Virus record (IMG/VR): IMGVR_UViG_3300035212_003113
Span: 307,676 to 371,675 of that record
Length of the DNA stretch: 64,000 nucleotides
Direction: 5' to 3' (one strand)
A program made the position numbers and the translations under genes. Under the pieces are notes generated by a model. That model saw only the letters and a program-made list of their open reading frames with translations. It did not search any database and was not told where the DNA came from. Below, piece by piece: positions 11,580 to 64,000 of the stretch. Every line of letters starts with the position of its first letter. Positions within the stretch are counted from its first letter, which is position 1.

Positions 11580-12038
11580 ATGAAGCTAAGCAAATGGTCG
11601 TTATATTACCAACCACTTGCATTAGATAATTTCGACAGTTTTCGCCAGGAGTTCCGTGACAGTAATCAACTGTTCTACACTCCTCAGTACGACAATGCCC
11701 TGCTCGCTATGTGGACAGCTGCTTGCGAGGCTATGGACAAAATTCAAACAGCCAATATGCAGCGCTGGCTGCCAGCAGACATATACTTCAATATGTCTGC
11801 TTTTTCATCTGTTTGGTTTTTTTCGTTGCACATTAAGCAACCGCTGCTGTCAATGCTAGATATGCGATGCATCCGCTGTTCGGTACCAACTATCCGTGGG
11901 CGAGTGCGGAATGAGCCAACGCCAATAAGCGTGGCGTTATATCTTTCTGGAGTTCAGCCGTCTGATGTTACTCTGCTGCGCCATCTACTTCCAACTGCAC
12001 AGATAGATGGCAATGAGGTTACCATTTACGTAGATTAG
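11580..12038 (+). CDS. hypothetical protein, MKL-signature N-terminus
   Basis: 152 aa, starts MKLSKWSL. Confidence 0.6.
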   Translation: MKLSKWSLYYQPLALDNFDSFRQEFRDSNQLFYTPQYDNALLAMWTAACEAMDKIQTANMQRWLPADIYFNMSAFSSVWFFSLHIKQPLLSMLDMRCIRCSVPTIRGRVRNEPTPISVALYLSGVQPSDVTLLRHLLPTAQIDGNEVTIYVD

Positions 12039-12060
12039 TAGGTCGGATGTAAAAATCCGT

Positions 12061-13533
12061 ATGCCTAATGTTGAAATAAAAGTATTTAACTGCCACGCAG
12101 AGATTGACGGCGAGCTGCAGCAGGGTGAAATCGATACGCTTGGTCGTGCTCTAAGTTACACCCAGGCAAATTCAAGATACAGCTTTGCATATAAATCTGG
12201 TCATTGGGATGGCCGAGTACGCCTCCTCAATAGACAGCTACAGTTCCCAGCTGGACTGGTGGACGAAGTAGTTAGAGTTCTGGCAGGATTTGGAATTGTA
12301 CCTCAAGTCACCGATTGTCGCAAAGGCATCTCTCACTCTCCTGTCGCGGACTGGCAAGGCCACCCGCTGCGGGACTATCAGCAAAGAGCTGTAGAGCGAG
12401 CACTTGATGTCGGCCGTGGCACAATGAAGATGGCCACTGGCGCCGGCAAGACAACCGTGATCGCCGCACTATGCGGGGCATACAACACTCAGACAGTGGT
12501 GTATGTCGTAAGCCTTGACTTGCTCACACAGGTAAAAGAAACAATCGAGACCTGTCTTGGTATTCCAGTAGGCCTTGTCGGCGGCGGCAATTGCAGTCTT
12601 GAAAAGATTACTGTATGCAGCGTGTGGAGTGCTGCAGCTGCGTATAATACAAAAGACGACGCAGACTCAGAAGAGGACGTAGCAGAGGATAAGTGGAGTC
12701 CTTCTGACGAACAAAAAAAGAATATCCGTGATATGGTCGAGGCAGCCAGACTTGTCATTCTAGACGAATCGCAATTTGCTGCAGCTGCCTCTATCCAAGC
12801 GATAATGAAAAATTCAAAATCTGCCGCTAACCGCTTTGGATTCTCTGGTACGCCATGGCGCAGTGATGGCGCAGATATCCTGCTGACTGCGGCATTTGGC
12901 GGTAACATTGTAGACATTCGTGCTTCTGATCTAATAGAGCTAGGATGGCTTGTTGAGCCACGTATAGCGTTTCGCGACATACCTGCAGACTTCAAGCTGC
13001 CCAAGAAGTGGGCAGATGTCAAAAAAGCATATATAGTTGAGAACGAAGTCAGGAATCATCTGCTTGTGCAGAATACTTGCAAGCTGCTGGATCTAGGTCG
13101 CAAGCCACTGCTGTTGTTCCGAGACATAAAGCACGGTCGCATGCTAGAAGAAATGTTGCCAGATGGTATCCGCTACGAGATGGTAACTGGAGCTCTTGCG
13201 ATGGATGAGCGCGAGCGTATCAAATCCCAGTTCAAAGCCGGCAAAATAGACTTGGTACTTGCTTCATCTGTATTTGACCAGGGCATCGACTTGCCTGCGC
13301 TTGATGCACTTGTGCTTGCTGGTGGTGGCAAGTCTACGGCAAAAGCACTGCAGCGTATTGGCCGAGTAATACGGGCTGCACCAGGCAAGACAGACGCACT
13401 TGTGCTAGAGACCTGGGATCAGTCGCATTTTGTCAAGAAGCATTCGTCTGCCAGATATGAGGCGTATCGTCTTGAGAGTAGGTTCAAGATCTCTGCTGGG
13501 CCTGAGATGCAGGCTACAATAGGAAAGAAATGA
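12061..13533 (+). CDS. superfamily 2 helicase (UvsW/XPB-like)
   Basis: LRDYQ Q-motif, ATGAGKT, DESQ, GFSGTP, GIDLP, QRIGRVIR. Confidence 0.9.
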   Translation: MPNVEIKVFNCHAEIDGELQQGEIDTLGRALSYTQANSRYSFAYKSGHWDGRVRLLNRQLQFPAGLVDEVVRVLAGFGIVPQVTDCRKGISHSPVADWQGHPLRDYQQRAVERALDVGRGTMKMATGAGKTTVIAALCGAYNTQTVVYVVSLDLLTQVKETIETCLGIPVGLVGGGNCSLEKITVCSVWSAAAAYNTKDDADSEEDVAEDKWSPSDEQKKNIRDMVEAARLVILDESQFAAAASIQAIMKNSKSAANRFGFSGTPWRSDGADILLTAAFGGNIVDIRASDLIELGWLVEPRIAFRDIPADFKLPKKWADVKKAYIVENEVRNHLLVQNTCKLLDLGRKPLLLFRDIKHGRMLEEMLPDGIRYEMVTGALAMDERERIKSQFKAGKIDLVLASSVFDQGIDLPALDALVLAGGGKSTAKALQRIGRVIRAAPGKTDALVLETWDQSHFVKKHSSARYEAYRLESRFKISAGPEMQATIGKK

Positions 13534-14240
13534 AAAAACAAGATTTTGGAATTCATGCGCCCAAGACCTGTGGTGGCGCGCTTGTTGCTGCATTTACAGA
13601 AAACAATTTGCCATACCTGGAGTGTGATCGCTGTAGTCATCGCATAGATGACTGGATTCGCTGGGCAGAAAAATACTCTGTAATGTGGCAGGACACAGAG
13701 GCTTGGAATGACTCCAAGAACCACATCTCGTGCCTGCTTGGCTATTTTTGTCACAAATACCAAGAATCATATGGCATGCCATATACCCTCAGCCTTTCTC
13801 CACAGGGCTTGTTCCGCGGCTCTGAGGCAGTCTTCTGTCGTCGGCTACTCGCTAGCTTTGCTAATTCTGTTACAGAGGCCCGCGACTATGTCGACTGGTA
13901 CTTTGTCAACAAGGTGCAGTCTCGGAAGAAGAAGGTTACAAGCATGAGCGTGCTGCTTGTGCCGAATGTTATCGGCCTATTCAAGCACCAGGCTGCCAAG
14001 AAGCAGCGCATTACGCGATCCACTCCGGTGCCGCTAAAGATGTTAGACTGGATTAAAGACAATGCCCCTACTGTTCTCTCTATGACGCAGCTCATTGACT
14101 TTGGCGATTTGCAGCAGCTACTACGTGCAGCTCCTAATCGTCGTGCAGCCAGCGAGGACCTGGATCGCTTTATCCAAGAGCTGTACAAGAAGAAGCTAAT
14201 AGACAATGACCTAAATATTCAGGGTTTGGAAGCAGAATGA
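13530..14240 (+). CDS. hypothetical protein with N-terminal Cys cluster, inside the replication module
   Basis: H-x3-TCGG...ECDRC; 4-nt overlaps with both neighbours. Confidence 0.65.
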   Translation: MKKQDFGIHAPKTCGGALVAAFTENNLPYLECDRCSHRIDDWIRWAEKYSVMWQDTEAWNDSKNHISCLLGYFCHKYQESYGMPYTLSLSPQGLFRGSEAVFCRRLLASFANSVTEARDYVDWYFVNKVQSRKKKVTSMSVLLVPNVIGLFKHQAAKKQRITRSTPVPLKMLDWIKDNAPTVLSMTQLIDFGDLQQLLRAAPNRRAASEDLDRFIQELYKKKLIDNDLNIQGLEAE

Positions 14241-14920
14241 AAAAAATAGTACTGGATACAAAACGCAATCAGGTGTTTTTTGCCGAGGAGATTCGTCAGG
14301 ATGGCGACTCTGTTGTTGCGGTATGTGGCAGCAAACTGCGCACGATTCAACTGGACAAGATCGCGTACATCGAGGACCTCGGCGATGAGCCTGTCACTAG
14401 AGAGATCGAGCCTCAAGATGAAGATACGGCGGTTACAAAATCGGCTGCTCCGCAGCCTGTTGTCGGCGCTGCACCACAACACATAAAGCTGCCGTCTTCG
14501 TTTGCACAGGCAGTAGAGAAGCGGCTGCGCGATGCCCCTCCGCCTGAACCATTTGATGATCATCCTTCAGTGGATGCCACATCACGCGTAACGGTTGAGC
14601 TAGTCGGTTCTGCATCAGGAGCATATGACGTACTCACTGATGCCGATTCTCTGGCGGCCGAGCACGTAAAGGAGCGGCTTGTCTCGGATATATTTTCAAA
14701 TGCCGTGCTAAAGGACAGTTTGCGTTCACACAATGTTGTCGGCATCACTAAGAGCGGTAATACTGTGACGTTGGATTGCAGGCAGAAGCCACCGATTCAG
14801 CCGCCAGCAGTAAGTGCGTCAGTAGCCAGTCTGGTGAATAATATCGTAGGTCTAGTTACCCCATCAGTAAAACTACCGGATCTTCCGTTACAGGTACCAA
14901 ATGAGGATAACCAAAAATAA
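14237..14920 (+). CDS. hypothetical protein with Pro-rich linkers
   Basis: 227-aa operonic ORF. Confidence 0.65.
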   Translation: MKKIVLDTKRNQVFFAEEIRQDGDSVVAVCGSKLRTIQLDKIAYIEDLGDEPVTREIEPQDEDTAVTKSAAPQPVVGAAPQHIKLPSSFAQAVEKRLRDAPPPEPFDDHPSVDATSRVTVELVGSASGAYDVLTDADSLAAEHVKERLVSDIFSNAVLKDSLRSHNVVGITKSGNTVTLDCRQKPPIQPPAVSASVASLVNNIVGLVTPSVKLPDLPLQVPNEDNQK

Positions 14921-19189: not shown

Positions 19190-19621
19190 ATGAAGCTAGA
19201 TAGTTATGGGATATACTTCCTAGGCCAAGCAGCAATGCGAAGGATGCCCGTCTCTCATCTAATAGATTCATTTAAAGGCTCATCTTTGGGCTGGGATCGC
19301 GAGCAAGCTATTCGCCTTGAATGGCTAAAAAAGCAATATCCCGAGTACCACAAACTGGTGACGACAGGAGACATAGATGGTTCTATGTTATTCCTGTCTT
19401 CTTCCAATATAGAAGACAGTAGCATAAAAGAAGGTCAGCGCTGCGCTGTATGGGTAAATGGTCACAGAGCTGGCACTGCTGAATATCAGCAAGGACGGGA
19501 ATACAGCAAGATCATAGTGTCCTTGTTTGTCGATATGCGATGGGCAGAGGGAATTCTGGTTTCAGAATATCCGCAGTTTAAATCTAATCTTGGTAAGCTG
19601 ACCTGGGTCAGGCGGCACTGA
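19190..19621 (+). CDS. hypothetical protein, MKL-signature N-terminus
   Basis: 143 aa, starts MKLDSYGI. Confidence 0.6.
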   Translation: MKLDSYGIYFLGQAAMRRMPVSHLIDSFKGSSLGWDREQAIRLEWLKKQYPEYHKLVTTGDIDGSMLFLSSSNIEDSSIKEGQRCAVWVNGHRAGTAEYQQGREYSKIIVSLFVDMRWAEGILVSEYPQFKSNLGKLTWVRRH

Positions 19622-23936: not shown

Positions 23937-24917
23937 ATGACAGACTCGCCTCGTTTAATGACAAAAACAGAGAGCTTTGTGGTGGAGTATCCACAGGCCG
24001 TAGACTTTGCAAACAAGCAACTTAAGATATTTTGGCTGCCGGATGAGATCAAGGTAGAGAAGGATGTGCAGGATATCCTGGTTAATATGACGCCTGCAGA
24101 AAAGCATGGCGTAATTACGACCTTACGCCTGTTTACGCTTTATGAGCTAAAGGCCGGAGCAGAGTACTGGGGCGGTCGTTTTATGCGTCTGTTTCCTCGA
24201 CCTGAACTAATGCGCATGGCAAGCGCATTCAGTATGTTTGAGCTGGCAGTGCACAAGCCATTCTATAACAAGATCAATGAGCTACTGCATCTAAATACAG
24301 ATGAGTTTTATCTGTCTTACGCAGCAGACCCTGTGCTCGCAGAGCGCATGGCGTTCATCGATCAGATTGTCAGTGGAGATGATCCGCTGCTATCGCTGGC
24401 CGGCTTTTCAATGGTAGAAGGAGCTGTGCTTTATAGCTCTTTTGCGTTCCTAAAGCATTTCCAGTCAAAGGGCAAGAACAAGCTCAACAACGTAGTACGC
24501 GGCATTAACTTTAGTGTTCGCGATGAGAACCTGCATAGCATGGGCGGCGCCTGGGCATTTAAGCAGCTGCTGGAGGAGATGGCTCCTGATCAGGGCGCAC
24601 TCAAGGAGCTCGAGAGCAAGATATTTGCTATCGCTAATACCCTGTGTGAGCACGAGCATCGCATCGTAGAGATGATTTTTGAAAAAGGCGACATAGAGGG
24701 CATTTCAAAAGAACAGATGCAGATCTTTGTCAAGAGCCGTGTAAACGTGTGCCTGTCGCAACTGGGCTTTGCACCGCTCTTCAAGGTAGATCCAGAAGAA
24801 GATCGTGTGTCTGCTTGGTTCTACCGCGGTATAAATAACTACGGCTACAATGATTTTTTTGCCGGGGCGGGTAAAGAGTATAACCGCAACTGGGATGAGT
24901 TCGGATTTACTTGGTGA
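23937..24917 (+). CDS. nrdB: class I ribonucleotide reductase beta subunit
   Basis: FWLPDEI, ELAVHKPFY, VEGAVLYSSF, RDENLH; ATG 23937 after GAGG. Confidence 0.92.
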   Translation: MTDSPRLMTKTESFVVEYPQAVDFANKQLKIFWLPDEIKVEKDVQDILVNMTPAEKHGVITTLRLFTLYELKAGAEYWGGRFMRLFPRPELMRMASAFSMFELAVHKPFYNKINELLHLNTDEFYLSYAADPVLAERMAFIDQIVSGDDPLLSLAGFSMVEGAVLYSSFAFLKHFQSKGKNKLNNVVRGINFSVRDENLHSMGGAWAFKQLLEEMAPDQGALKELESKIFAIANTLCEHEHRIVEMIFEKGDIEGISKEQMQIFVKSRVNVCLSQLGFAPLFKVDPEEDRVSAWFYRGINNYGYNDFFAGAGKEYNRNWDEFGFTW

Positions 24918-24925
24918 GGCATATT

Positions 24926-26620
24926 ATGGATCTTTATGAAAAACTATCTACTGAGCGCAAAGAGCTACAGGCCCAGGGCCTGATACCTGAATGGTACAGC
25001 ACTGCCGGATGGCAGATGTTCAAGGAGCGCTATCTTAGTGGCACAGATCGCGCAGTACGCGGTCAGTTCGAGCGCATTGCGGCAACGGCCGCTCGTCATT
25101 TGCGCAGCATTGGCAAAGAGGAAGAGGCTCGGGAGAAGTTCTTCCAGATGCTTTGGGACGGATGGCTAAGCCCTAGCACTCCAGTCCTGTCTAACATGGG
25201 CACAAACAAGGGCATGCCCATCAGCTGCAGTGGCACATACGTAGGCGACGAGATCGACCAATTTTATGGAGTACGGCACGAGACTGCCATGCTTACCAAG
25301 AATGGCTTCGGTACTGCAGCCTATCTCGGCGACATTCGTCCTCGCGGTAGCAAGATTAGCCGGGGCGGCAAGGCGTCCGGAGTTCTGCCTGTTTTCAAGG
25401 GCTTTGTACAGGATTCGCGAGACGTAAGCCAGGGCACCCGTCGTGGCGCATGGGCAGGGTACCTGCCAATTGATCATGGCGACTTTGACGAGCTTGCTGA
25501 CTATGTAATGGCAGAAGTCGATGACTGCAACGTTGGCTGGAATGTTAGCGATGCCTTTATCGCAAAGCTCGATGCTGGCGACCCAGAGGCTGTGCGACGC
25601 TACCAGAAAGCCATGAAGATGAAGATGGTAACCGGTCGCGGATACTTCTTCTTTCCAGACAAGGCAAATAAAAAGCGTCCCAAGATGTATGTCGAGCGCG
25701 GTCTTGATGTCAAGGCACCGCAGCTGTGCAACGAGATCATGCTTCATTCGAGCAAGGAATTCACGTATACCTGTGTACTGTCAAATATGAACCTCGCTCA
25801 CTATGATGCGTGGAAAGACACAGATGCAGTATTCTGGGCTACAGTATTCTTGGACTGCGTTATTTCCGAGTTCCTCGAGAAAGCAGAGAGCGAGCCAATG
25901 CTTGGCAAGGCTGTTCGTTTTACGAAGGCCGGTCGTGCTCTTGGCCTGGGCGTTTGCGGCTTCCATTCATATCTTCAGGAAAAGCGCTTGGCGTACGAGA
26001 GTCTTGATGCACACTTCAAGAACATGGAAATCTTTAAGCATCTGCATGATGAGTCCAAGCGCGCTTCGGCGTGGCTGGCGCAGCAGCTCGGCGAGCCTGA
26101 GTGGTGTGTAGGACATGGTGTGAGAAATACCCACAATATCGCACTTCCTCCCACCAAGTCAACGGCGCTACTTATGGGCGGCGTTTCAGAGGGAATCTCT
26201 CCTGATCCTGCCATGACATATACCCAGACTTCTGCTGCAGGCGAAGTGGACCGAATCGTAGTTCCTCTACTGAAGCTCATGAAGGAGCGCGGAGTGTATA
26301 CGGATGCTGTGATCAATGACCTTGTTGATCATCAAGGTTCCGTTCAGCATGTAGCTTGGCTAACTGATGACGAGAAGGCCGTCTTTAAGACTGCGTTTGA
26401 AATCAATCAAAAGACTGTGCTGCGCATGGCTGCTGCCCGTGCTAAGCATATCGACCAATGGCAAAGTCTTAATCTTTTCTTTGCTGCAGACGAGGATCCT
26501 GCGTGGATTTCGGAATGCCACAAGGTAGCTTTCCATGACCCCGACATCCTTGGGCTGTACTATATCTATACCCAGGCTGGAGTTCAGGCCAGCAAGGGCG
26601 AGTGCGAGGCCTGCCAGTAA
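24926..26620 (+). CDS. nrdA: class I ribonucleotide reductase alpha subunit (short, no ATP cone)
   Basis: SPSTPVLSN, ISC, QLCNEI, TCVLS, PPTKS, YYIY, C-terminal CEAC. Confidence 0.93.
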   Translation: MDLYEKLSTERKELQAQGLIPEWYSTAGWQMFKERYLSGTDRAVRGQFERIAATAARHLRSIGKEEEAREKFFQMLWDGWLSPSTPVLSNMGTNKGMPISCSGTYVGDEIDQFYGVRHETAMLTKNGFGTAAYLGDIRPRGSKISRGGKASGVLPVFKGFVQDSRDVSQGTRRGAWAGYLPIDHGDFDELADYVMAEVDDCNVGWNVSDAFIAKLDAGDPEAVRRYQKAMKMKMVTGRGYFFFPDKANKKRPKMYVERGLDVKAPQLCNEIMLHSSKEFTYTCVLSNMNLAHYDAWKDTDAVFWATVFLDCVISEFLEKAESEPMLGKAVRFTKAGRALGLGVCGFHSYLQEKRLAYESLDAHFKNMEIFKHLHDESKRASAWLAQQLGEPEWCVGHGVRNTHNIALPPTKSTALLMGGVSEGISPDPAMTYTQTSAAGEVDRIVVPLLKLMKERGVYTDAVINDLVDHQGSVQHVAWLTDDEKAVFKTAFEINQKTVLRMAAARAKHIDQWQSLNLFFAADEDPAWISECHKVAFHDPDILGLYYIYTQAGVQASKGECEACQ

Positions 26621-27196: not shown

Positions 27197-27466
27197 ATGG
27201 CCATTACACCAGATATTGCACTTGAGCTAACAGATGATCAGCTGATCACAATAGCAGATGTTCAAGCTGAAGTGGATCTGTACCTGGCCAATGAATACTC
27301 CGATGGCCGCAGCGTAGAGGTGCGTCACGCGCTTCTTGCGCCGCTATTTGCGTACGAAGAAAAAGTACTTGATGCGTTTGTGTTGATGTATCAGGCCGCC
27401 GGCTGGACGGTGGTCCGCTACCCTGACAAGCGTCAGGGCGATTGGCTCTCTTTTTCTAGAACCTGA
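27197..27466 (+). CDS. hypothetical protein
   Basis: 89 aa, AGGAG upstream. Confidence 0.65.
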   Translation: MAITPDIALELTDDQLITIADVQAEVDLYLANEYSDGRSVEVRHALLAPLFAYEEKVLDAFVLMYQAAGWTVVRYPDKRQGDWLSFSRT

Positions 27467-48291: not shown

Positions 48292-48370
48292 CCGTCCCGG
48301 CCCGGGGAGTCGCATCCCCGGTCCCGAACCTGCCCGGTCCTAAAAACATTATCTTTTGATCTTGATAAGC

Positions 48371-48628
48371 ATGAACAACAACGACAGCCTCACTGCCCGA
48401 TCCAACATCGTCGCGCTCCGGCGCGCCGACCGCGATGCGGCTGCCGCGCGCCGCGCGGGCTACGGAACTGACCGCGCCGCTTGGTGCGGCGTCGATGCCG
48501 GCCTTGCCAAGCTCATGACGGAGGCGGGCCTTTTCGCCCGCCTGCCCGCTGAGGCCCGCGAGCAGTGGGACGCCGGTTGTCTTTCCGCGTCGGAAGCTTT
48601 CGCTATCATCGGCGACGAACTATTTTAG
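48371..48628 (+). CDS. cassette gene, probably leaderless
   Basis: ATG falls exactly on the inferred +1 of element 48336; no SD. Confidence 0.65.
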   Translation: MNNNDSLTARSNIVALRRADRDAAAARRAGYGTDRAAWCGVDAGLAKLMTEAGLFARLPAEAREQWDAGCLSASEAFAIIGDELF

Positions 48629-48772
48629 TTCGCCGCCCACCCTTCCACCGCCCCGGCCCCGCCGGGGCTTTTCTTTTGCCAGGTCTCGAACCTGGCAGCG
48701 GTCCTAAAAACAGATATTTCTGATCCTGTTAGACATCGGAACGGCGGCACGGGCCGCACAACGGAGGATAGC

Positions 48773-49183
48773 ATGGCTTCGCAAAAGCGCTCTCTCGCCC
48801 TTGACATTCGTCTCGCTGGCATCGATTTCCCGTCGGACGTGGGCCGGGCGTTGGAGTTCTACGTTAACGGCAAGCTCCTGTTTCGTGGGGACCGTGCGGG
48901 ATTCGAGCGGCTCTGGGCCGCTCTCCCAAATATCCATGCCGCTTTCGGCGGGATGGAGTCTGAAGGCGTGCGCCCCTTCCGCACGGGGACCGTGCGCTTT
49001 CAGCCGGGCCGCAACCCGCAAGTCGGATACGTCTACACGTTGGAGGACGTGGCCGCCTGCATGCTGTTCCGTCATGAAGTCGAGGAAGCTCTTGACGGGC
49101 GCGGGGCGTTCCTGCCGGACGACGTGCTCGAAGATACTCACTCCTGCGCAGGGTGGGGATGTGTTTGTCACAGTGAGAGCTAG
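48773..49183 (+). CDS. cassette gene, hypothetical protein
   Basis: GGAGG SD after element 48700. Confidence 0.7.
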   Translation: MASQKRSLALDIRLAGIDFPSDVGRALEFYVNGKLLFRGDRAGFERLWAALPNIHAAFGGMESEGVRPFRTGTVRFQPGRNPQVGYVYTLEDVAACMLFRHEVEEALDGRGAFLPDDVLEDTHSCAGWGCVCHSES

Positions 49184-49339
49184 CCTCACAGCGGGCCTCG
49201 CCCGGCCCCGGCCTAATCAGCCGGGGTTTTTTTGTCTTTTTTTGCGGGCGTCATCGGTCCTAAAAACATAACTTTTTGATCCTGATAGGTGTCCAGCGGT
49301 TCCCGGCGCTCCTGCCGGCCCGCCCTGCCCGAGGTTAGC

Positions 49340-49648
49340 ATGACCAACGTCATCGGCATTATTCTCTCTACCGACTACGGCACCCTCGAAATCGAGGGGG
49401 TGGAGGCCGGCGCTCTTGCCCGCCTGCGCCGTGACCCGGTACTGGTCGCGGCCGTGGAGGCGGCCGACGACGACGCCTTTGCGGCTCGTCTCATCGACCT
49501 CCACCCGGAAGTGGCGGACTATGAGGTCCCGTCAACCGACTTCCTGCGGGTGACGCGCCTGCCCGCCGGCACCCGGTACGGGATTGTCATGGGCGACGGG
49601 GATACCGAAGCGCTCGTCTCGGAGCTTGACCTTACCGAGACGGCATGA
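49340..49648 (+). CDS. cassette gene, hypothetical protein
   Basis: GAGGT SD; MTNVIGIIL. Confidence 0.65.
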   Translation: MTNVIGIILSTDYGTLEIEGVEAGALARLRRDPVLVAAVEAADDDAFAARLIDLHPEVADYEVPSTDFLRVTRLPAGTRYGIVMGDGDTEALVSELDLTETA

Positions 49649-49743
49649 CCGTCCGGGCGGGGGCCGGGTTCACCCGGCTCCGCCCCTCTCCTCCCCGGTC
49701 CTAAAAACAGATTCTTTTGATCCTGTTAGACATGGAGGCCACG

Positions 49744-50010
49744 ATGAAGCTGACAAAGAAGGAAGCTCGCAACGTTCGCGTTCTCGCCGCGCAGCACGAC
49801 GGGTTGGACGTGCTCGCCAGTGCGGCGGGCATCGCCCGGGGCGACCGCTCGGTCGCTTACCCGGTGGAGAACCGGGGCCGGGTGGGTTGGTTCAAGCAGG
49901 TGTGCCACCTCGCCGGCCGCGAGACGGGTCGCAACCACTGGGTTGCGGCGGTGGTCCGCGCCAACCGTCCCGCTAACGCGGTGGCGATTCTCCGGGCGCT
50001 CGAAGACTAG
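49744..50010 (+). CDS. cassette gene, hypothetical protein
   Basis: GGAGG SD; an in-frame ATG at 49732 also sits on the inferred +1. Confidence 0.7.
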   Translation: MKLTKKEARNVRVLAAQHDGLDVLASAAGIARGDRSVAYPVENRGRVGWFKQVCHLAGRETGRNHWVAAVVRANRPANAVAILRALED

Positions 50011-50192
50011 CGGGTGACGGGCCGGGGCGCGTAGCCCCGGACCCGAGCCTACCGGTCCTAAAAACAGATTCTTTTGATCCTGTTAGACAGAACGGCGGCG
50101 ACGAAACGATACGATGCGCCGCACATAACGGGTTAAACGTAGCGCCGGTGGTCGGCGGTACGCTAGGCCCTAGAAACAAAAGGGAAAGCACA

Positions 50193-50705
50193 ATGTCGCT
50201 CATCAAGTTTGGTTCCAACACCGGCAACTCTGGCAACACCCTTGCTCTCCCCGCTCCCCGTGTGACGGCGCCCGCCCCTATGGCGCCGATGCCTCTCCCG
50301 GCGCCGGTCGCTGCGACGAGCACGAGCCCGGACATTGCGGCTCTTATGGCGAGGCTTGCGGCGGCCGAGGCGGGGCTCGCTACAGAGAAGGCCCGGGCCG
50401 ATGCGGCCGAGGCTGCCCGTGCGGCGAGTGGCGGTAGCCGTGGATACAGCATGAAGGCGTCGGAGAAGGGCGCTATCTCGATCTACGGCGTCTCTACCAA
50501 GTTCCCGGTGACGCTCTACGCTCCCCACCTCGTGGGAATCATCCGTGATCTGGTTATGACCGGCAAGGCGTCGGCGTTCCTCCGGGAGAATGCGGCGAAG
50601 CTTTCGGTCAAGGTCGACGGCACGGGCCAGGCGGGCACGGGTGCTTCGGAATCGGCAGTGCGCAGCCTTGCCGATGAGCTTGATCGGGTCACCCGCAAGG
50701 CGTGA
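50193..50705 (+). CDS. MSLIK paralogue 1 (coiled coil + SEKGAISIYG..FPVTLY domain)
   Basis: Near-colinear similarity to 53453..53896 and 54869..55297. Confidence 0.8.
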   Translation: MSLIKFGSNTGNSGNTLALPAPRVTAPAPMAPMPLPAPVAATSTSPDIAALMARLAAAEAGLATEKARADAAEAARAASGGSRGYSMKASEKGAISIYGVSTKFPVTLYAPHLVGIIRDLVMTGKASAFLRENAAKLSVKVDGTGQAGTGASESAVRSLADELDRVTRKA

Positions 50706-50826
50706 ACGGTAGGAAGGGGGCCGGGTTCGCCCGGCCCTTTCCTTCCCCGCCGGTCCTAAAAACAGATTCTTTTGATCCTGTTAGACAAGCGGCGACGACG
50801 AAACAAACGCCGCGAATGGAGACGCG

Positions 50827-51219
50827 ATGCGCAAGCAGTCTGCTCGTTCCCTCACCCTTGCTCTTTCCCGTGCCGCTGCTGACGTGCTTGTCGGCAAGCT
50901 GTCAAGCCTTAACTATGGGAATACCACCACGCCGGGGCCGCGTCAAACGGCCATCCTCGCAGATATTGCCCGCCGCAAGGCAACCCGGCGCGGGCGTCGG
51001 GCTGCTACTGCCGCTGAGATTGCGGAAACGCAAGGCATCCCGGTCTCCAACGTGGAGCGGGCGCTGTCCTGTCTCCGGTGCCGTGGCCTTGTCGACCGCC
51101 GGGGCACCCGGTTCGGCCTTACCATCCGGGGGACGGAAGCTGCCGCCCTGTTCTCCGGGGTGCAGGTGCCCGACGGCATCGGGCTGGTCCTGACTGGTCA
51201 TGCTATCCGCAAGGTGTGA
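50827..51219 (+). CDS. winged helix-turn-helix protein
   Basis: RQTAILADI...TAAEIAETQGIPVSNVERALSCLRCRGLV...LTIRG. Confidence 0.75.
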   Translation: MRKQSARSLTLALSRAAADVLVGKLSSLNYGNTTTPGPRQTAILADIARRKATRRGRRAATAAEIAETQGIPVSNVERALSCLRCRGLVDRRGTRFGLTIRGTEAAALFSGVQVPDGIGLVLTGHAIRKV

Positions 51220-51320
51220 CCGTCCGGGGCGGGTCGGGGGAGAAATCCCCCGGCCTTTCCTTCCGGCCCCGGTCCTAAAGACATACTTACCTGATCCTGA
51301 TAAGCACAACGGAGGCCGGT

Positions 51321-51515
51321 ATGAAAAGCAAGTTTTCTTGCCCTACTTGTAAGCAACGCCCTGCGTGTGACTGTGCACCCCCGGACTATGCCCGGATGCG
51401 CCGGGAAAGCGAGCATGCACCGTCGACTGCCGTCTATGTTGCCGCCCTGCAACGTGCATGGGAGCACCGTGCGATGATGCTCGAAGCGGACGAGACCCGC
51501 GACCACCGCGATTAG
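51321..51515 (+). CDS. small Cys-rich protein
   Basis: CPTC...CDC; GGAGG SD. Confidence 0.65.
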   Translation: MKSKFSCPTCKQRPACDCAPPDYARMRRESEHAPSTAVYVAALQRAWEHRAMMLEADETRDHRD

Positions 51516-51533
51516 CGGGTAGGAGGACTGCGC

Positions 51534-51716
51534 ATGAAAGAGCTTTTCTTTTGCATTGATCAGGAACACGTTGATGCCGGGGAGTTCCTGCCCGGCGAGA
51601 TCGGGCACTGGGCAGTGCGCGGACTCCCCGGCGGGGTGCTCGTATTCAACAACCGCTATCTAGCCGAACTGGTGTGGGCGGGTATCGCACCTCACCACGG
51701 CTACGCTCACAACTAG
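51534..51716 (+). CDS. hypothetical protein
   Basis: AGGAGG SD. Confidence 0.65.
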   Translation: MKELFFCIDQEHVDAGEFLPGEIGHWAVRGLPGGVLVFNNRYLAELVWAGIAPHHGYAHN

Positions 51717-51795
51717 GGGATCGGGGCGGACACCTGCCCCTTTCCTTCCCGGTCCTAAAAGCATACCGGGCCGATCTTGATAGCCGGGAGGCACG

Positions 51796-51987
51796 ATGGA
51801 ACGGCTCCGACAAACGCTCCGGGCGTTGTTCGCCCCGCCGCATTATCCGCCCGGCTATGCGCCGGTGTCCGGTCATGCGGTGCATTCATACGAGAAAAAC
51901 TATTTTCTGGCGGACACGCGCCGCCGTGCGAGGGTAGCCTATGAAGCCGCGAAACGCAATCTTGTTGCAGATGATCCTAACCCGTAA
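51796..51987 (+). CDS. cassette gene, hypothetical protein
   Basis: GGAGG SD after element 51751. Confidence 0.65.
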   Translation: MERLRQTLRALFAPPHYPPGYAPVSGHAVHSYEKNYFLADTRRRARVAYEAAKRNLVADDPNP

Positions 51988-52178
51988 AGGCGGGGTCATG
52001 CGCGACCGCAAGGCGGAATCGAAACGCCGGGCGTGCCGGGGGCGAGTCCGCCGGGACCGCGACGACGAGTGACCGGCTGGGGCGCCAGCCCCACCTGGCT
52101 CGCGACCGGTCCTAAAAACATACTCCTCTGATCCTGTATAGCAGAAGCCGGAACGAAACCAACTAGCAGGAGGCAGCT

Positions 52179-52472
52179 ATGTCCAAGGTTCACTTCAACA
52201 CCGGTCGTCTTTATGGTCCCCATGGTCAACGCATCGTGGCTATGCAGTGCCCTTCCGGCGAAGTTGTGTTCGTTGACCGGGACCGGGGCATCCTAGGTGC
52301 CTTGACTGAAAAGTCGGGGGAGATGGGCGCCAACACCGGAGGCGTCAAGGTGTTCCCGCCGTTGACGGCGGCGCAGGTACAGGCGGAAGTCAGTCGCCGC
52401 TATGTCGGCAGCTACGCTTATCAAAGCAGCTCACTGGCCTACCAGTTTGAGGCGCAGCTTCTCGCGGACTGA
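52179..52472 (+). CDS. cassette gene, hypothetical protein
   Basis: AGGAGG SD after element 52108. Confidence 0.7.
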   Translation: MSKVHFNTGRLYGPHGQRIVAMQCPSGEVVFVDRDRGILGALTEKSGEMGANTGGVKVFPPLTAAQVQAEVSRRYVGSYAYQSSSLAYQFEAQLLAD

Positions 52473-52556
52473 GGTCCGGCCCCGCACGCGCGGGGTTCTT
52501 TGCTGAGCCGGTCCTAAAAACAGATTCTTTTGATCTTGTTAGACACGGAGGCGACG

Positions 52557-52850
52557 ATGCGCAGCAGCGAGCAGGTTTTCGTGGCAGTCGTTTCAACCTC
52601 CCGCCACTTTGGCGGGCATGAGGAAGGCGGCTGGTGGTTCGACTGGTCGAATGTAGAAAAGGCGTGGTCTTTTGACAACCCGCGCCGGGCGCGCCGGTTT
52701 GCCCGGCGGCTGGAACGCGAGGAAGCGCATTACGCGCCGCGTCATGACCGCTTCTCGGTTCTCGGCGGGACCGATGTAGAAGTCCGCCGCACGCGGGACC
52801 CGGAAGCACTCGCCGAATGGCAGAGCCGGCAGCGCCCGCGATACGAGTGA
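52557..52850 (+). CDS. cassette gene, hypothetical protein (GGxEEGGWW motif)
   Basis: GGAGG SD; FGGHEEGGWWFD. Confidence 0.7.
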   Translation: MRSSEQVFVAVVSTSRHFGGHEEGGWWFDWSNVEKAWSFDNPRRARRFARRLEREEAHYAPRHDRFSVLGGTDVEVRRTRDPEALAEWQSRQRPRYE

Positions 52851-52945
52851 GCGGACAACGGACCGGGGCCTAGCTCCGGTCCCGAGTCCGGCCGGTCCTA
52901 AAAACATAAACTTTTGATCCTGATAGGTGCCACAACGGAGGCTGC

Positions 52946-53146
52946 ATGCAGGTGACGGAGATTGCGATTGACGGCAACGGCAACGCGACGGTGAACGCCC
53001 GCGAGGGCGGGATGGAAGCGGCGCTCGCCCGCGCCCCGTGGGCGCTGCGGGGATGGGCGGCGGAACGCTGCAATCTGGAAATGACGGGGCGGGAGTACCT
53101 GACCCGCCGCGCCGAGATGCTGCGGGCGCTGGCGGACGTCCGCTAG
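52946..53146 (+). CDS. cassette gene, hypothetical protein
   Basis: GGAGG SD after element 52894. Confidence 0.7.
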   Translation: MQVTEIAIDGNGNATVNAREGGMEAALARAPWALRGWAAERCNLEMTGREYLTRRAEMLRALADVR

Positions 53147-53452
53147 GGGACGGGGTGCCGGGGGGGCACCTGACTCCGGACCGGGCCTAAAAACATACTC
53201 CTCTGATCTTGTCCCGCATACGTGGGAGGTGTGCCATGCGGGGCTAAAAGATTGCAAAACTTATCTGCAAGGGCCAACGGCGAGTCCGGGGGCGGGCGTC
53301 CTATTGTCCGAAAAGCGCGGTCGCCACCGGTCCTAAAAACAGCTTCCCCTGATCTTGTAGGGTGTCCCGGCGACGACGCCGCGACGCAGCGCCGATGACG
53401 CAGCGCCCGATGGTCGGGGGTTGCGGATAGGCTAGAACGCAGGATACAAGCC

Positions 53453-53896
53453 ATGTCGCTTATCAAGCTCCCCGCCCCTGTCGCCGCCACCGTTGCCACG
53501 CCCGTCACGGCGCCGTCTCTGTCTCCTGACATTGCCGCGCTCATGGCCCGCCTCGCAGCGGCGGAAGCTGCGGTCGCGACGGAAAAGGCCCGCGCCGACG
53601 CCGCTGAAAAGGTCAAGGCGGAGTCGCGGGGTTATTCTGCGAAGGCATCGGAAAAGGGCGCGGTTTCCATCTACGGGGTTAGCGCCCGCTTCCCTGTCAC
53701 GCTGTATGCCCCGCACTTTGTCGGGGTGTGCCTTGACCTTATCATGACGGATAAGGGGGTCAACTTCCTGCGTGAAAACGCGGATAAGTTGTCTGTCAAG
53801 GTGGACGGCACCGGGCAGGCCGGGACGGAGGCGAGCCGGGCGGAAGTGCTGCGCCTCGCAGACCGGCTGGCCGGTGCGGTTGCCCGCCTGAAGTGA
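53453..53896 (+). CDS. MSLIK paralogue 2
   Basis: SPDIAALMARL...KASEKGAVSIYGVSARFPVTLYAPH. Confidence 0.8.
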   Translation: MSLIKLPAPVAATVATPVTAPSLSPDIAALMARLAAAEAAVATEKARADAAEKVKAESRGYSAKASEKGAVSIYGVSARFPVTLYAPHFVGVCLDLIMTDKGVNFLRENADKLSVKVDGTGQAGTEASRAEVLRLADRLAGAVARLK

Positions 53897-54868
53897 GGCG
53901 GGCCGGGGGTGGGCGGGGCGACCCGCCTGCCCCTTTTCCGGCGACCGGCGCCCGGCCGGACCCGCCGGGTTCGCCACCGGCCCTAAAAACATACTCGCCT
54001 GATCCTGTAGGACGTACTCTGGTGACAAACCGGGGCGGGCGAACTATTCCTTTTTTTATTGCCCGGCGCGGGGCAGTCCGGTCGTCGGTCCTAAAAACAT
54101 ACGCCGACGATCCTGACAGACGGGTCAACGGGACAACCGGGGGCGGGATAGGTGCGTCGATTGCAAGAAAAAACCGGGGAACAATAACAGGATCGGGAAA
54201 GCCCGTTTTTAGGACCGGGATTGCCTGCAAAGTTTATGCCCCTTTTTATTGTGCCGGTCCTAAAAACAGCTTCTCCCGATCCTGTTACGCGTCAACGCTA
54301 TAGTCGGGGGCGGGGAGAGGTGTATCCGGTGGATTAGTTATGTGGACAAAAGATCCGTTTTGTTTTTGCGTTTTATGATAGCTGACAGGGGCCGGCGGTC
54401 CTAAAGACGGAGTCCGCCGATCCTGTAACCTGCGTCAACGGGACAACCGGGGACGGGTGCGGTGTGCCTAGTGGCTTTGTAATGCTGATGCAATGTTTGC
54501 AGGATCTTTTCTATCTGTTATTAGGATTGCGGCTTCAGTCCTAAAGACGGTGTTGTGTGATCCTGTTGTGCTTTTACTGATTCTGGCTTTCCCTAACGGT
54601 AGAGAGCTGGGAGATAACTTTATAATCTTTAGCAGGCCGCCCGGGCTTGCTGGATAGCTATTGTCTCGCGCGCGTTGATAGGGATGCTTGGTAGGTTGCT
54701 AGATAGTACCTGCTAGAAAGCAGTTTTTCTTGACAGGGGGCGGCGGTCCTAAAGTCGGGGTCCGCCGATCCTGTAGAGCAGAACGGCGGCCCACTACATA
54801 GCCGCAAAGGTGAAGCGTTATACCCGGTGGTCGGGTATCTCGTGGAGCCTAAATACAGGGAGAGCATC

Positions 54869-55297
54869 ATGTCGCTCATCAAGGTCGGAACCCCCGTCGC
54901 CAACAACACCGTCACCTCTGTCAGCCCGGATGTGGCAGCTCTCATGGAGCGTCTCAAGGCTGCCGAGGCTGCGCTGGCAGCAGAGAAGGCCCGTGCCGAT
55001 GCTGCTACCAAGACTAAGGGCGAGGCGCGTGGTTACACCGCCAAGGCCAGCGAGAAGGGTGCTATCAGCATCTACGGTGTGTCCGCTCGCTTTCCTGTCA
55101 CGGTCTACGCTCCCCACTTTGTGGGGATTGCGCTGGACCTCATCATGACCGACAAGGGAGTGGCGTTTCTCCGGGAGAACGCTGATAAGCTCTCTGTCAA
55201 GGTGGATGGTACCGGGACCGCTGGTACCGAGGCTAGCCGTGCCGAGGTTCTCCGGCTGGCTGACCGTCTCGCTGAAGCTGTCGCCAAGCTGAAGTGA
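54869..55297 (+). CDS. MSLIK paralogue 3
   Basis: SPDVAALMERL...KASEKGAISIYGVSARFPVTVYAPH; start re-called. Confidence 0.8.
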   Translation: MSLIKVGTPVANNTVTSVSPDVAALMERLKAAEAALAAEKARADAATKTKGEARGYTAKASEKGAISIYGVSARFPVTVYAPHFVGIALDLIMTDKGVAFLRENADKLSVKVDGTGTAGTEASRAEVLRLADRLAEAVAKLK

Positions 55298-55658
55298 GGC
55301 AGGCAGGTGGGGGCCGGGATAACCCGGCTCCCTTTCCTGTTAGAATGACAGCTTACCCCTACACAGGTGGCAATAATGCTGCGCTTTTTGGAACTTCCTC
55401 CTAGCCGTCCTGACGTCGAGCCTACGTGGACGGAGTGTATTGCGATGGCCTTTCAATGTGCCCGCTTTGCGCCGCTCGAAGCGGACAGGGCACGGGCCAT
55501 GCATGCTGCCTGTAGCTGGTTAGAAAAAGGCTTGTTTTGGCTTGATTGAAGCCACTACCGGGGAGGGGCGACTCTCCCCGGTACCTACAACCTGCAACAC
55601 ACCTGCCAACGGGACAACCGGGGGCGGGCGATCTATTCGCGCGCGCGTTGTGTGCTCC

Positions 55659-56281: not shown

Positions 56282-56776
56282 ATGAAACTTGACAAAGTCG
56301 CGCTGTCTTATGCAAGATCCAGCGAAGAAGCTATATCTATACTAACAGAGAGCAGACCAGAGTTTGTCCCGCTGCTGCATCCTGATGATTTGCGTAAGAT
56401 AACAAAATATATTGTTGCCTGCAATAACCATAATCATAAAGTCTTCAAGGTTACTATACCCCTGTTTGCTTGGTACGAGCATAGGATATGGCCAGATCCT
56501 TCTGCCTTTCCTAGCAGCACAGGAATCATTTACTCTATCATGGTGTGGGTAAAGTCTCCAAAAAGAGTTCTGAAAAAGAACTTCACTCTTTTGTATCCAT
56601 TTGATCTGGGTTCTAATGCCGCATTAGACAGGGAAAGCATAAAGGAAATAATCCGATTGAAGGTAGAGAAAATAGAGAGTATGAAGGTTAGCTATAAGGC
56701 TGCCGCTGATAAGCTAAAGAATATGGCAATCGTGACAATCGGGGCCGGGCCTAAAGTCGGGTCCGGCCGATCCTGA
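56282..56776 (+). CDS. MKL-signature protein inside the cassette array
   Basis: MKLDKVAL after GGAG; stop codon lies at the right end of element 56747. Confidence 0.65.
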   Translation: MKLDKVALSYARSSEEAISILTESRPEFVPLLHPDDLRKITKYIVACNNHNHKVFKVTIPLFAWYEHRIWPDPSAFPSSTGIIYSIMVWVKSPKRVLKKNFTLLYPFDLGSNAALDRESIKEIIRLKVEKIESMKVSYKAAADKLKNMAIVTIGAGPKVGSGRS

Positions 56777-56891
56777 GGGACGACCGACGAACCGCCGCAG
56801 CATACAGGATGCGGTGGATCTAACAGTAGCGCCGGTCCTAAAGCCGGTGTCCCCCGATCCTGTAGGACGAACCGCAAACCCCGGAGACGCC

Positions 56892-57200
56892 ATGACCCTG
56901 CCTATTGTTGGTGAGAAGCCCGCTCATACCGGCAGCCTGTCGGAGATTCGTACTTGGATGCGTGCTCCTAGCACCCGTGATGCCTGGATGGCACAGAATG
57001 TACTGCTGGGTGGTGCGTTCGCTACCTACATGGCAGACCAAGAGCCTGACGATGTTCGCCGAGTTTTTTGCATTGAGCCTGTCTGTCAGTTGAAGGAGGA
57101 TGCGGGCATCCGTGGTCGTGGTATCCACCTGTTTGCTCTGAAGGACTTTGAAGACGCGCTGTGGACTGGGTTTGCCGCTACCATCAACCGCCGTCGCTGA
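56892..57200 (+). CDS. cassette gene, hypothetical protein
   Basis: GGAG SD after element 56834. Confidence 0.65.
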   Translation: MTLPIVGEKPAHTGSLSEIRTWMRAPSTRDAWMAQNVLLGGAFATYMADQEPDDVRRVFCIEPVCQLKEDAGIRGRGIHLFALKDFEDALWTGFAATINRRR

Positions 57201-57219
57201 AGCCCTGACAGGAGACAAC

Positions 57220-57714
57220 ATGCATAAGTCTTTTTCGGAAATGCTTGGCGCTAACTTCAAGCCGGCTGACTTTGCTCCCGGTCGCTATGACATGATGGTA
57301 GACTATTTCTCTTGGACCCTGCATGTTGCCAATGCTATTTCTGAGGCCGTTGCTAATCATGTTCGGGAAAGCCGCCCGGATGCCATGCCGGACCTGAATG
57401 ACCCGGCTGTTATTGTTCGCACTCTGTATAGCTTTTTCAATGGGCGTATTACTGAGAATGACGGGCTAGAGCTTGTCCTGATTCCCGAAGGTCAGCCGTC
57501 TGATCACTGGGATATTATTCCCGGCAAAAAGTATAGCGTCAACTACGCTTACTTGCACAATGCCTGCGCTATTATGCTCGGTGTTCCTACCTATGTCAAG
57601 CAGGATGATGCTGGTCTTATTCGCAACTTTTGGTTTGTCGAGGAATACTTTTTCCGTGATGCCGAAGGCCTTGAGCGTTGGCTAAAGATCCGGGCTGCCC
57701 GCCGGGCTGCCTGA
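57220..57714 (+). CDS. hypothetical protein
   Basis: AGGAG SD; stop overlaps the left end of element 57713. Confidence 0.65.
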   Translation: MHKSFSEMLGANFKPADFAPGRYDMMVDYFSWTLHVANAISEAVANHVRESRPDAMPDLNDPAVIVRTLYSFFNGRITENDGLELVLIPEGQPSDHWDIIPGKKYSVNYAYLHNACAIMLGVPTYVKQDDAGLIRNFWFVEEYFFRDAEGLERWLKIRAARRAA

Positions 57715-63335: not shown

Positions 63336-63427
63336 GACTTCCTGACAGTCCCCGCCGGCCCTAAAGCCGGCGTCCCCCGATCCTGAAGGCCGAACCCCGC
63401 CGCAAACCTTCTAACGCTGGAGATAAA

Positions 63428-63748
63428 ATGGGCACCCGTTTTGTACCGATGGCTGATGTAAAGTCCGCTTCTCTCGCTGCCGGCTCCCATTGGTTTGAGC
63501 CAGATTCTATGCGATTCTTCCGCACCCGCTTGCCCCTGCTTGGTAAGATGGATGACGGCGGCAGAGTATGGTTCGTCAGCTCTGAGGCACCCCGCAGCGG
63601 AAACCGCAAGTATTCTGTTCGGGTATTTATTCCACAGACCGGCTCTGTACAAACTCACGGAACTTTTCACTCGTACGCTTCCTCTCGTGCTGCACAGCGG
63701 GCTGTCGATACTGCGATTGCAGCTGGTATTGGTCCGCAGTCAGCATAG
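63428..63748 (+). CDS. conserved phage hypothetical protein (HWF...MRFF family)
   Basis: HWFEPDSMRFFRTRL...FVSSE...YSVR; GGAG SD after element 63357. Confidence 0.7.
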   Translation: MGTRFVPMADVKSASLAAGSHWFEPDSMRFFRTRLPLLGKMDDGGRVWFVSSEAPRSGNRKYSVRVFIPQTGSVQTHGTFHSYASSRAAQRAVDTAIAAGIGPQSA

Positions 63749-63902
63749 CAGAAAGGGCCGCCCTAAAGCCGGTGTCCCCTGATCTTGTAGGTGGAGCCTG
63801 CTGACTGCATCAGTCCCGTCAAAAGAATTTATTATTTCTTACCAGGACAATCATCCACAGTGACGTTGTGTCCCATTAGACTGCCTTTGCACGGAGGACA
63901 AA

Positions 63903-64000
63903 ATGAAACTAGACGTCTGGTCTCTCCTCGATGCTGGTGGCGTCTTTCAATACGGAAGGTACGAGATCAGGAACAGTAATGGCTTGCTTCACCGGGATGA
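63903..64000 (+). CDS. 5' end of an MKL-signature protein with an LHR motif, truncated by window end
   Basis: GGAGG SD; MKLDVWSLL...NGLLHRD. Confidence 0.6.
   Translation, partial: MKLDVWSLLDAGGVFQYGRYEIRNSNGLLHRD

Follow-up and report, generated by a model that had tools for sequence, protein, structure and literature searches.

Why should 19 small and otherwise diverse phage proteins all begin in the same way? The question is raised by the 64 kb at the end of one contig of 371,675 bp, IMG/VR virus record IMGVR_UViG_3300035212_003113. This stretch of 64,000 nucleotides (record positions 307,676–371,675) will be referred to as the window. A first-pass annotation, made from the sequence of the window alone, had noticed an N-terminal Met-Lys-Leu (MKL) or a close variant on these proteins, followed by hydrophobic residues at positions 6 and 8, and had suggested that it is either a targeting tag on a variable payload or the first strand of a common hypervariable fold. 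The observation itself is confirmed, and it now takes in about 115 genes instead of 19, as well as an entire phage lineage. MKL starts are present on about 115 proteins, which fall into 55 independent sequence groups and account for about 23% of all genes. As judged by comparative sequence analysis, MKL is a lineage-specific, peptide-level signature that marks the small, fast-diversifying accessory proteins of this freshwater jumbo phage. It is possible, and we put this forward tentatively, that the signature is a class-wide N-terminal recognition signal tied to the proteolytic handling of these small proteins.

Enrichment and Distribution of the MKL Start

Throughout the 371,675-bp genome, every NTG start followed by a Lys codon (AAR), a Leu codon and a reading frame of at least 60 codons was counted, and ten genomes simulated with a third-order Markov model served as the control. 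A total of 120 open reading frames (ORFs) of at least 60 amino acids began in this manner, as compared to 6–15 (mean about 9) per simulated genome, and the real set is put at about 115–120. Background frequency, an alternative that the first-pass annotation had itself raised, does not account for 120 starts where about nine are expected. Lys-Leu is the top-ranking of the 400 dipeptides after start codons. A crude gene caller, which is based on coding potential and chooses starts blind to MKL, assigned MKL to 60 of 461 genes. Met-Lys-Ile (MKI) ranks second among the starts and is found in 15 cases. When the proteome was collapsed to 375 independent groups by merging paralogs, MKL was found in 55 (14.7%). 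Chance as the origin of the signature is ruled out by the simulated genomes together with these paralog-collapsed counts.

The distribution of the start is uneven. Most MKL genes lie outside the window, at 0–90 kb of the genome, where about 41% of the genes carry it; within the window, 12 of the 22 genes of the block at 27–33 kb are MKL genes. The start is nearly absent from 120–330 kb, the part of the genome with the structural genes and much of the replication machinery. Sorted by class, MKL occurs in 45 of the 160 small accessory-region groups, 8 of the 77 small core-region groups, 1 of the 120 large-protein groups and 1 of the 18 groups from a high-GC island. With each family weighted once, the consensus consists of M-K-L, polar or acidic residues at positions 4–5, and hydrophobic residues at positions 6, 8 and 10. 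Residue 6 is hydrophobic in 74% (background, 40%) and aromatic in 37% (background, 5%), residue 8 is hydrophobic in 72% (background, 46%), and residue 9 is often Arg or Lys. The pattern at residues 6, 8 and 10 is also seen when the 43 MKL proteins that lack a paralog are considered alone.

Selection at the Peptide Level

All 19 starts in the window are present, comprising 17 that read M/V/L-K-L and the variants MKT (at 29793) and MKM (at 30450). The other particulars of the first-pass annotation also hold. Start codons vary (16 ATG, two TTG and one GTG), as do the codons for Lys (AAG, AAA) and Leu (CTA, CTG, TTA, CTT); residue 6 is hydrophobic in 19 of 19 and residue 8 in 17 of 19, the exceptions being the genes at 28390 (Pro) and 32397 (Arg); and 4-nt overlaps are found at 9 of the 14 gene junctions of two divergent operons at 27.4–32.7 kb. 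A syntenic locus of another phage, designated L008, contains orthologs of all 15 signature-bearing genes of this block (13 MKL plus the MKT and MKM variants) at 45–84% identity, among them those of the three minus-strand genes and of the genes with TTG or GTG starts. Since every signature gene has an ortholog in L008, the gene calls and starts of the block are sound.

The codon variation had been taken by the first-pass annotation to indicate selection on the protein, and the 15 ortholog pairs (window versus L008) substantiate this, as codons turn over and residues are held. Residues 1, 2 and 3 are conserved in 100, 100 and 93% of the pairs and residue 8 in 87%, whereas the rest of the protein averages 62%. 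The Lys2 codon is synonymously different in 7 of the 15 pairs and the Leu3 codon in 5 of 13, including CTG-to-TTG changes, and ATG, GTG and TTG start codons interchange between orthologs. For the MKL genes of the whole genome, the start codon is ATG in 75%, GTG in 17% and TTG in 8%; Lys2 is encoded by AAG in 67% and AAA in 33%, against 64 and 36% genome-wide; and position 3 draws on the full set of six Leu codons, CTA being in no more than mild excess. In the largest MKL family, family A, alignment columns average 19% identity, but M1 and K2 never vary and the conservation of L3 is 90% or more. That a surface Lys is held so tightly in this family implies that folding does not explain its retention. 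Selection, as these sequence comparisons show, acts on the peptide and not on DNA or RNA. The DNA upstream of the MKL starts holds no information besides a weak Shine-Dalgarno (SD)-like G-rich patch, and a nucleotide-level signal, i.e., a promoter, ribosome-binding site, operator or recombination site, is ruled out by the codon usage and by the synonymous turnover between orthologs. An ATGA overlap fixes A as the first base of codon 2, and NTGA overlaps occur in 31% of MKL genes as opposed to 12% of other genes. This constraint is nevertheless ruled out as the cause of Lys2, because just 31% of MKL genes are in 4-nt overlaps and because an overlap cannot yield Leu3.

A constraint on the peptide might also arise during its synthesis. 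According to this explanation, Met-Lys followed by Leu or Ile would give processive early elongation and would be kept by purifying selection, as a translation-yield optimum, in small genes that are poorly initiated, having a weak SD sequence or being translationally coupled within long polycistronic arrays. The signature would then concern the synthesis of the proteins and not what becomes of them; we regard this as a serious rival, though on balance unlikely. Its model is a translational-ramp motif, Lys/Asn then Tyr/Ile at early positions, which raises yield whatever the codons (PMC6920384) and which resembles MKL in being a codon-independent peptide effect with Lys and then a hydrophobic residue very early in the protein, and which would fit the codon turnover. 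The second rank of MKI among the starts and the excess of NTGA overlaps speak for it as well, and so does a weaker SD pairing, which reaches −5 kcal/mol or lower in 34% of MKL genes compared to 46–54% of others. However, the published motif has its window at codons 3–5, whereas MKL is fixed at residues 2–3, positions 4–5 are variable, and residues 6, 8 and 10 are also constrained. A ramp would be expected preferentially in highly expressed genes of all classes, yet MKL is class-specific: the core genes of the structural and replication modules are almost without it, large proteins carry it in 1 of 120 groups, and it is missing from the small genes on the high-GC island of this genome. Furthermore, 69% of the MKL genes lie outside 4-nt overlaps, 21% have upstream gaps of more than 100 nt and a third have a good SD sequence. 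The residue at position 3 is almost exclusively Leu (115 versus 15 Ile and few others), which is narrower than a yield optimum predicts.

Families, Folds and Paralogy

BLAST and iterated hidden Markov model searches assigned the MKL proteins to family A (44 members of about 90 amino acids), a MORN-repeat family with 14 MKL members, family 3 with five members and about a dozen pairs; 43 proteins had no detectable paralog. Searches of Pfam and PHROGs with the MKL proteins gave no matches. When profiles of different families were compared with hhalign, N-terminus included, the best local match was nearly always residues 1–N against residues 1–N (E about 1e-3), and some pairs could be aligned weakly over the first 20–45 residues, again with E about 1e-3. 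After the first 10 residues had been trimmed, no similarity between families was detected, with all hhalign probabilities below 2%. The profile comparison hence upholds the view that a shared signature is carried by proteins that are otherwise diverse.

AlphaFold2 (AF2) models were built from family alignments. The family A model, with a mean predicted local distance difference test score (pLDDT) of 89.7, displays helices at residues 2–13, 17–28 and 34–38 followed by five strands; the family 3 model (pLDDT 86) displays a helical turn at residues 3–7, four strands and then three helices; and the MORN repeats make up a third architecture among the MKL families. Neither model opens with a strand; the motif starts out helical in the two of them, with a helical turn within residues 2–7. 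The first strand of a common hypervariable fold, as put forward by the first-pass annotation, therefore fails as a general account, the three topologies being different and the motif helical in both models. Nor is homology over the full length detectable among all the carriers, as would be expected of ordinary paralogy; it is present within families and not between them, and 43 carriers are singletons. Fold searches with the family A and family 3 models against the PDB, AFDB clusters and BFVD returned nothing significant. A HicB/UPF0150-like fold was considered for family 3 and rejected, having no support from Pfam, the PDB or BFVD. ESM Atlas models of two singletons were of low confidence.

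Paralogy accounts for part of the MKL set only. A deeper form of it, in which one or a few ancestral small genes were duplicated in tandem and drifted past recognition, the N-terminal helix start being retained for folding nucleation and as the initiation region, is likewise a serious rival, though on balance unlikely. The large tandem arrays of family A, the MORN family and family 3 are in keeping with such a history, as are the weak alignments over the first 20–45 residues and the helical turn with which both models open. On the other hand, nothing is left of the similarity once 10 residues are removed, the architectures are three in number, and folding does not require that Lys2 be invariant across paralogs of 19% identity and external homologs in the hundreds. 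There is also no trace of novelty derived by frameshift with the start retained: no alternative-frame matches were found inside genes, and an origin of the singletons from start-retaining frameshifts was rejected on this negative test. Deep paralogy would cover the origin and spread of the motif and not its maintenance, so that an extra constraint is still needed.

Two further sequence similarities were noted. The beta-hairpin part of family A (profile positions 50–82, Y-x-W...G-F) matches repeats in giant surface proteins of the Bacteroidota-type type IX secretion system with Ig/PKD domains (P0001, P0002 and P0020); the likeness is probably a shared repeat motif and not functional homology. 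A second shared module (family 2), approximately A-x-[ED]-L-D-x-x-G-(4–5 residues)-A-D-x-[IVL]-D, is located N- or C-terminally in about 15 proteins of 68–467 amino acids that differ in other respects. It occurs in the window in the minus-strand gene at 28387–28974 (residues 166–182), in 14 other genes of the genome and in the related contigs L006 and L041. One of the family 2 proteins (genome 64865–65695) also contains DUF7178 and a weak ClpS-like stretch.

Conservation in Related Phages

The family A profile retrieved 312 representatives at 50% identity from among 1.84 billion proteins. Among 43 homologs that were inspected, 38 begin with MKL and two with MKI, and in three, MKL or VKL lies a few residues into a gene call that had been extended too far. 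The contig L006, which has 53% GC and clear GGAG ribosome-binding sites, encodes MKL members of families A, 7, 16 and MORN mixed with non-MKL genes, and L008, L040 and L041 are also MKL-rich. At the sequence level, the signature is kept across a phage lineage. MKL proteins were found in no cultured phage and in no PHROG family. A search for cultured relatives of the phage gave none by DNA, none by family A and none that is close by core proteins, the best match being to Bacillus phage G at about 24% identity.

ClpS and Other Proteolysis Genes of the Phage

The genome encodes a ClpS protein at 75167–75403 (PF02617, 91 bits), and the gene, itself within the MKL arrays, is flanked by a family A MKL gene, a gene for an EamA-type membrane protein and an MKL-MORN gene. 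The phage protein aligns to solved ClpS structures (E = 2e-19) and retains both the core of the N-degron pocket (Asn-Asp-Asp, Thr-Pro, His) and the AETK segment. At the position of a Met in Caulobacter ClpS, which is Ala in the mutant PDB entry 3g1b and Arg in A. tumefaciens ClpS2, the phage ClpS has Tyr. This Met is the gatekeeper that sets ClpS specificity. It is present in nearly all other ClpS proteins retrieved, and at the gate the orthologs in related phage contigs have Tyr (78% identity), Tyr (72%) and Gln (65%). The two orthologs that could be placed (78 and 65%) are inside MKL arrays, one with 12 MKL and two MKI starts among 39 genes and the other with eight MKL and two MKI starts among 42 genes. 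Two further loci, L017 and L031, had been considered as phage relatives on account of their ClpS and were ruled out, being bacterial clpS-clpA loci.

A full-length Lon protease is encoded at 134540–136960, with a substrate-binding N-domain, an AAA+ module and Lon_C (E = 5e-86), and is conserved (81–100% identity) on six further viral contigs. A peptide deformylase gene (137962–138366) lies about 1 kb downstream of it, and a protease of the ClpP family, which in PHROGs matches head maturation proteases best and whose neighbors are not head genes, is located at 170857–171444. ClpS, Lon, peptide deformylase and ClpP together represent an unusually complete N-terminus/proteolysis toolkit for a virus.

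A Possible Recognition Signal Tied to Proteolysis

What we observe is that the signature exists and is enriched, is selected at the peptide level, occurs on different folds within one gene class, is conserved in the lineage and co-occurs with ClpS; from this we infer a partner that would read the signature, its putative identity (ClpS or Lon) and proteolysis as the outcome. A recognition label is consistent with the restriction to one class, with the constraint on the peptide and with the co-occurrence with ClpS. In the scheme that we tentatively favor, small proteins of unrelated structure would meet the same post-translational fate by virtue of the MKL label. The candidate reader, and a concrete candidate for the common partner to which the first-pass annotation had suggested docking, is the phage ClpS with its non-canonical gate, which would work with a host ClpA/ClpC-type unfoldase and ClpP; the phage Lon is the alternative candidate. 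Lys2 and Leu3 would form a latent degron, which might be exposed by N-terminal trimming or read directly by a re-specified ClpS, and the protein class could thereby be cleared on schedule. ClpS is known to bind N-terminal Leu, Phe, Trp and Tyr, and the L/F-transferase (LFTR) turns proteins with N-terminal Lys or Arg into ClpS substrates (PMC12258705). On account of these canonical specificities, Lys2 would be a secondary and Leu3 a primary destabilizing residue behind Met1. The most specific version of the scheme, a phage-run N-degron system in which about a quarter of the proteome, made up of its small accessory and host-takeover proteins, carries a latent degron that is read by a ClpS re-gated to Tyr or Gln and working with Clp or Lon, strikes us as decidedly doubtful.

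Several observations weigh against a proteolytic signal. The encoded N-terminus is Met, with K2 and L3 behind it, so the putative degron is masked, and a Lys in second position prevents the usual removal of the initiator Met. ClpS normally wants a free and flexible N-terminus, and residues 1–10 are predicted by AF2 to be ordered, as a helix packed on the domain (pLDDT 92 for family A and 84 for family 3). Searches of the phage genome for a methionine aminopeptidase, an M17 aminopeptidase, an L/F-transferase and a Clp_N-type unfoldase were all negative. Position 4 is acidic in 27% of the groups, and acidic residues near the N-terminus stabilize proteins in the E. coli pathway (PMC12258705). The co-occurrence of ClpS and MKL is co-inheritance in one lineage and not independent replication; three unrelated viral contigs that carry ClpS are not MKL-rich, and ClpS in jumbo phages is presumed to act on host proteins (PMC7824862). 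Lastly, the phage was found in no RNA run.

Comparison with Known N-Terminal Labels

The Leu/N-degron pathway (ClpS-ClpAP and L/F-transferase) resembles a proteolytic reading of MKL in that the signal, one that determines fate, is at the extreme N-terminus, and the phage has a ClpS with an intact pocket core. Its substrates, however, expose Leu, Phe, Tyr or Trp as the free N-terminal residue (or Lys/Arg in conjunction with LFTR), whereas the MKL proteins as encoded have Met first. The canonical ClpS gate is Met and that of the phage lineage Tyr or Gln; the phage genome is without LFTR, ClpA and a trimming peptidase; and the N-terminus is predicted to be ordered. ClpS and ClpP are known in some jumbo phages, where ClpS has been proposed to deliver targets, presumably host proteins, to the host ClpAP (Iyer et al., 2021; PMC7824862). 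These are the same kinds of genes, but no class-wide N-terminal signature has been tied to them.

The T4 internal proteins IPI, IPII and IPIII carry an N-terminal capsid targeting sequence (CTS) of about 10 residues with a Met-Lys start, on proteins that are small, diverse and fast-evolving (PMC3012670). As in the MKL set, a short Met-Lys leader is thus common to otherwise diverse small phage proteins. Unlike the MKL set, which lacks a conserved site, the CTS has a cleavage site directly after the leader (after Glu in L/I-x-E), and its carriers are a handful, whereas the roughly 115 MKL proteins are unlinked to head genes and have the leader modeled within the fold. By these features the MKL set belongs neither with the T4 CTS proteins nor with the canonical N-degron substrates. 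A capsid-targeting or injection leader of the T4 type, by which small effectors would be loaded into the prohead and co-injected with the DNA, is the least supported of the four readings and improbable, for although the phage has a ClpP-family protease that matches head maturation proteases in PHROGs, and the payloads are small, diverse, lineage-specific and accessory or anti-host-looking, [LIV]-x-E within residues 4–16 is present in just 20–25% of the proteins at scattered positions with no fixed cleavage motif, the leader is ordered within the predicted folds of families A and 3, about 115 cargo proteins would lack precedent, and the genes are in early-like accessory arrays with tRNAs and replication genes, away from head genes. 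This form of the targeting tag proposed by the first-pass annotation is accordingly not supported. A search of the genome for PF03420, the T4-type S77 prohead protease, gave no match, and the control genomes were silent in the same search. The probability left after the four readings goes to something not considered.

Short N-terminal motifs also serve as trafficking labels in bacteria: MIX, on effectors of the type VI secretion system, precedes unrelated C-terminal domains. MIX-type motifs are longer than MKL, do not occupy residues 1–3 and operate in bacterial secretion, and nothing implicates a secretion apparatus for MKL. No description of a proteome-wide N-terminal signature of this kind was found in the literature searched.

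Shared N-terminal labels on diverse payloads are known in few cases, such as the T4 internal proteins, and about 115 carriers would represent a different scale of viral organization. If MKL were a signal for degradation or handling and its reader were ClpS, Clp or Lon of the phage itself, this would be the first phage to program the turnover of its own proteome via the N-end rule, and a ClpS-read signal would give a function to the widespread and unexplained ClpS genes of phages. If it were a translation optimum instead, it would illustrate strikingly how yield can be controlled by the nascent peptide in nature. In either case, the MKL start provides a simple handle for finding the accessory gene class of this lineage in metagenomes.

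The Signature Genes of the Window

The leftward operon of the 27.4–32.7 kb block ends with a TTG-started MKL gene of 128 amino acids (27433–27819, minus strand), whose L008 ortholog (72% identity) starts with ATG MKL. Upstream of it on the same strand are an 81-residue MKL gene (27816–28061), which has 4-nt overlaps with both neighbors and a 74% ortholog, and a 110-residue gene with a TTG start (28058–28390), whose 68% ortholog likewise begins TTG MKL. A promoter scan of the divergent intergenic region of the two operons found nothing convincing.

The rightward operon, on the plus strand, opens with an MKL gene of 116 amino acids (29087–29437) that has a 69% ortholog in L008 and no Pfam or PHROG match. 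It is followed by a 120-residue MKL gene (29434–29796) with a 52% ortholog that begins GTG MKL, by the 79-residue MKT variant (29793–30032), whose ortholog starts with MKI, by a 144-residue MKL gene (30029–30463; 58% ortholog, low-confidence Atlas model), by the 89-residue MKM variant (30450–30719), whose 79% ortholog is likewise MKM, and by a 96-residue MKL gene (30747–31037; 84% ortholog). Next come the five tandem MKL paralogs of family 3, of 88–96 amino acids each, at 31018–31296, 31298–31564 (GTG start), 31561–31851, 31848–32135 and 32110–32400 (AF2 model m075ee9069d65). An 84-residue MKL gene (32397–32651; 52% ortholog) is the last of the operon. Convergent with this end, with a 4-nt overlap, is a minus-strand gene (32648–33811) for a 387-residue protein with C-terminal MORN-type repeats, which is related to the MKL-MORN family, has no MKL start and has an L008 ortholog at 79% identity.

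The other four signature genes of the window are all on the plus strand. A 152-residue singleton (11580–12038, MKLSKWSL...) without a Pfam match or paralog lies between the tubulin and UvsW helicase genes, and a 143-residue singleton (19190–19621, MKLDSYGI...) also has no Pfam match. The 164-residue MKL gene at 56282–56776 belongs to family 16; it has a paralog at genome 79731–80147, and its homologs in L006 and L040 likewise begin with MKL. The last, an MKL gene with MORN repeats (family 1, 154 amino acids), starts at 63903, reaches the end of the window at 64000 and runs on to genome position 494 across the circular junction; the ORF continues at genome position 30 because the last 127 nt of the contig repeat its first 127 nt. 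A 140-residue MKL ORF at 56838–57260 on the minus strand is antisense to plus-strand genes and is probably not a gene, being one of the approximately 10 chance MKL ORFs expected.

Genomic Context

IMG/VR classes the contig as a complete virus record with direct terminal repeats. The 127-nt repeat (window 63874–64000 and genome 1–127) means that the assembly is circular or terminally redundant; the direct terminal repeats of the IMG/VR record and an overlap left by the assembly of a circular or circularly permuted genome are equally possible explanations of it. The phage was detected in lake and river metagenomes. The functions encoded in the window, namely a TubZ/PhuZ-like tubulin, a UvsW-like helicase, DnaB, ribonucleotide reductase and a glycosyltransferase, are typical of jumbo phages. 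The tubulin gene (10182–11528, plus strand) matches Pfam Tubulin (1.8e-14) and TubZ-like_C, and its nearest phage match is in Bacillus phage G at 25% identity; a search for related loci with the tubulin as the query found nothing. Five tRNA genes (Thr-TGT, Met-CAT, Ser-ACT, Leu-TAA and Gln-CTG) are situated among the MKL arrays at genome 12482–35886, and the window contains none.

The high-GC island spans about 12 kb of the window (43200–55300) and has 60–74% GC, with 0.70–0.86 at third codon positions, as compared to about 49% for the genome. It consists of about 21 small plus-strand genes, only one of which has a possible MKL start. Several of these are paralogs of low-GC genes elsewhere, e.g., a P-loop kinase-like gene at 46540–47007 that matches genome 4161–4634, and the island looks like a block acquired from a high-GC relative.

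A giant plus-strand ORF of 2397 amino acids (33844–41037), with weak Pfam hints of a collagen-like repeat and a ComP_DUS-like domain, is conserved in L008, where the ORF exceeds 3163 amino acids and runs off the locus. The large subunit of ribonucleotide reductase in L008 (863–4541) is apparently split into ORFs of 488 and 256 amino acids by a 452-residue ORF without a Pfam match, which may be a mobile insertion; the copy in the window (24911–26620) is a single ORF of 569 amino acids.

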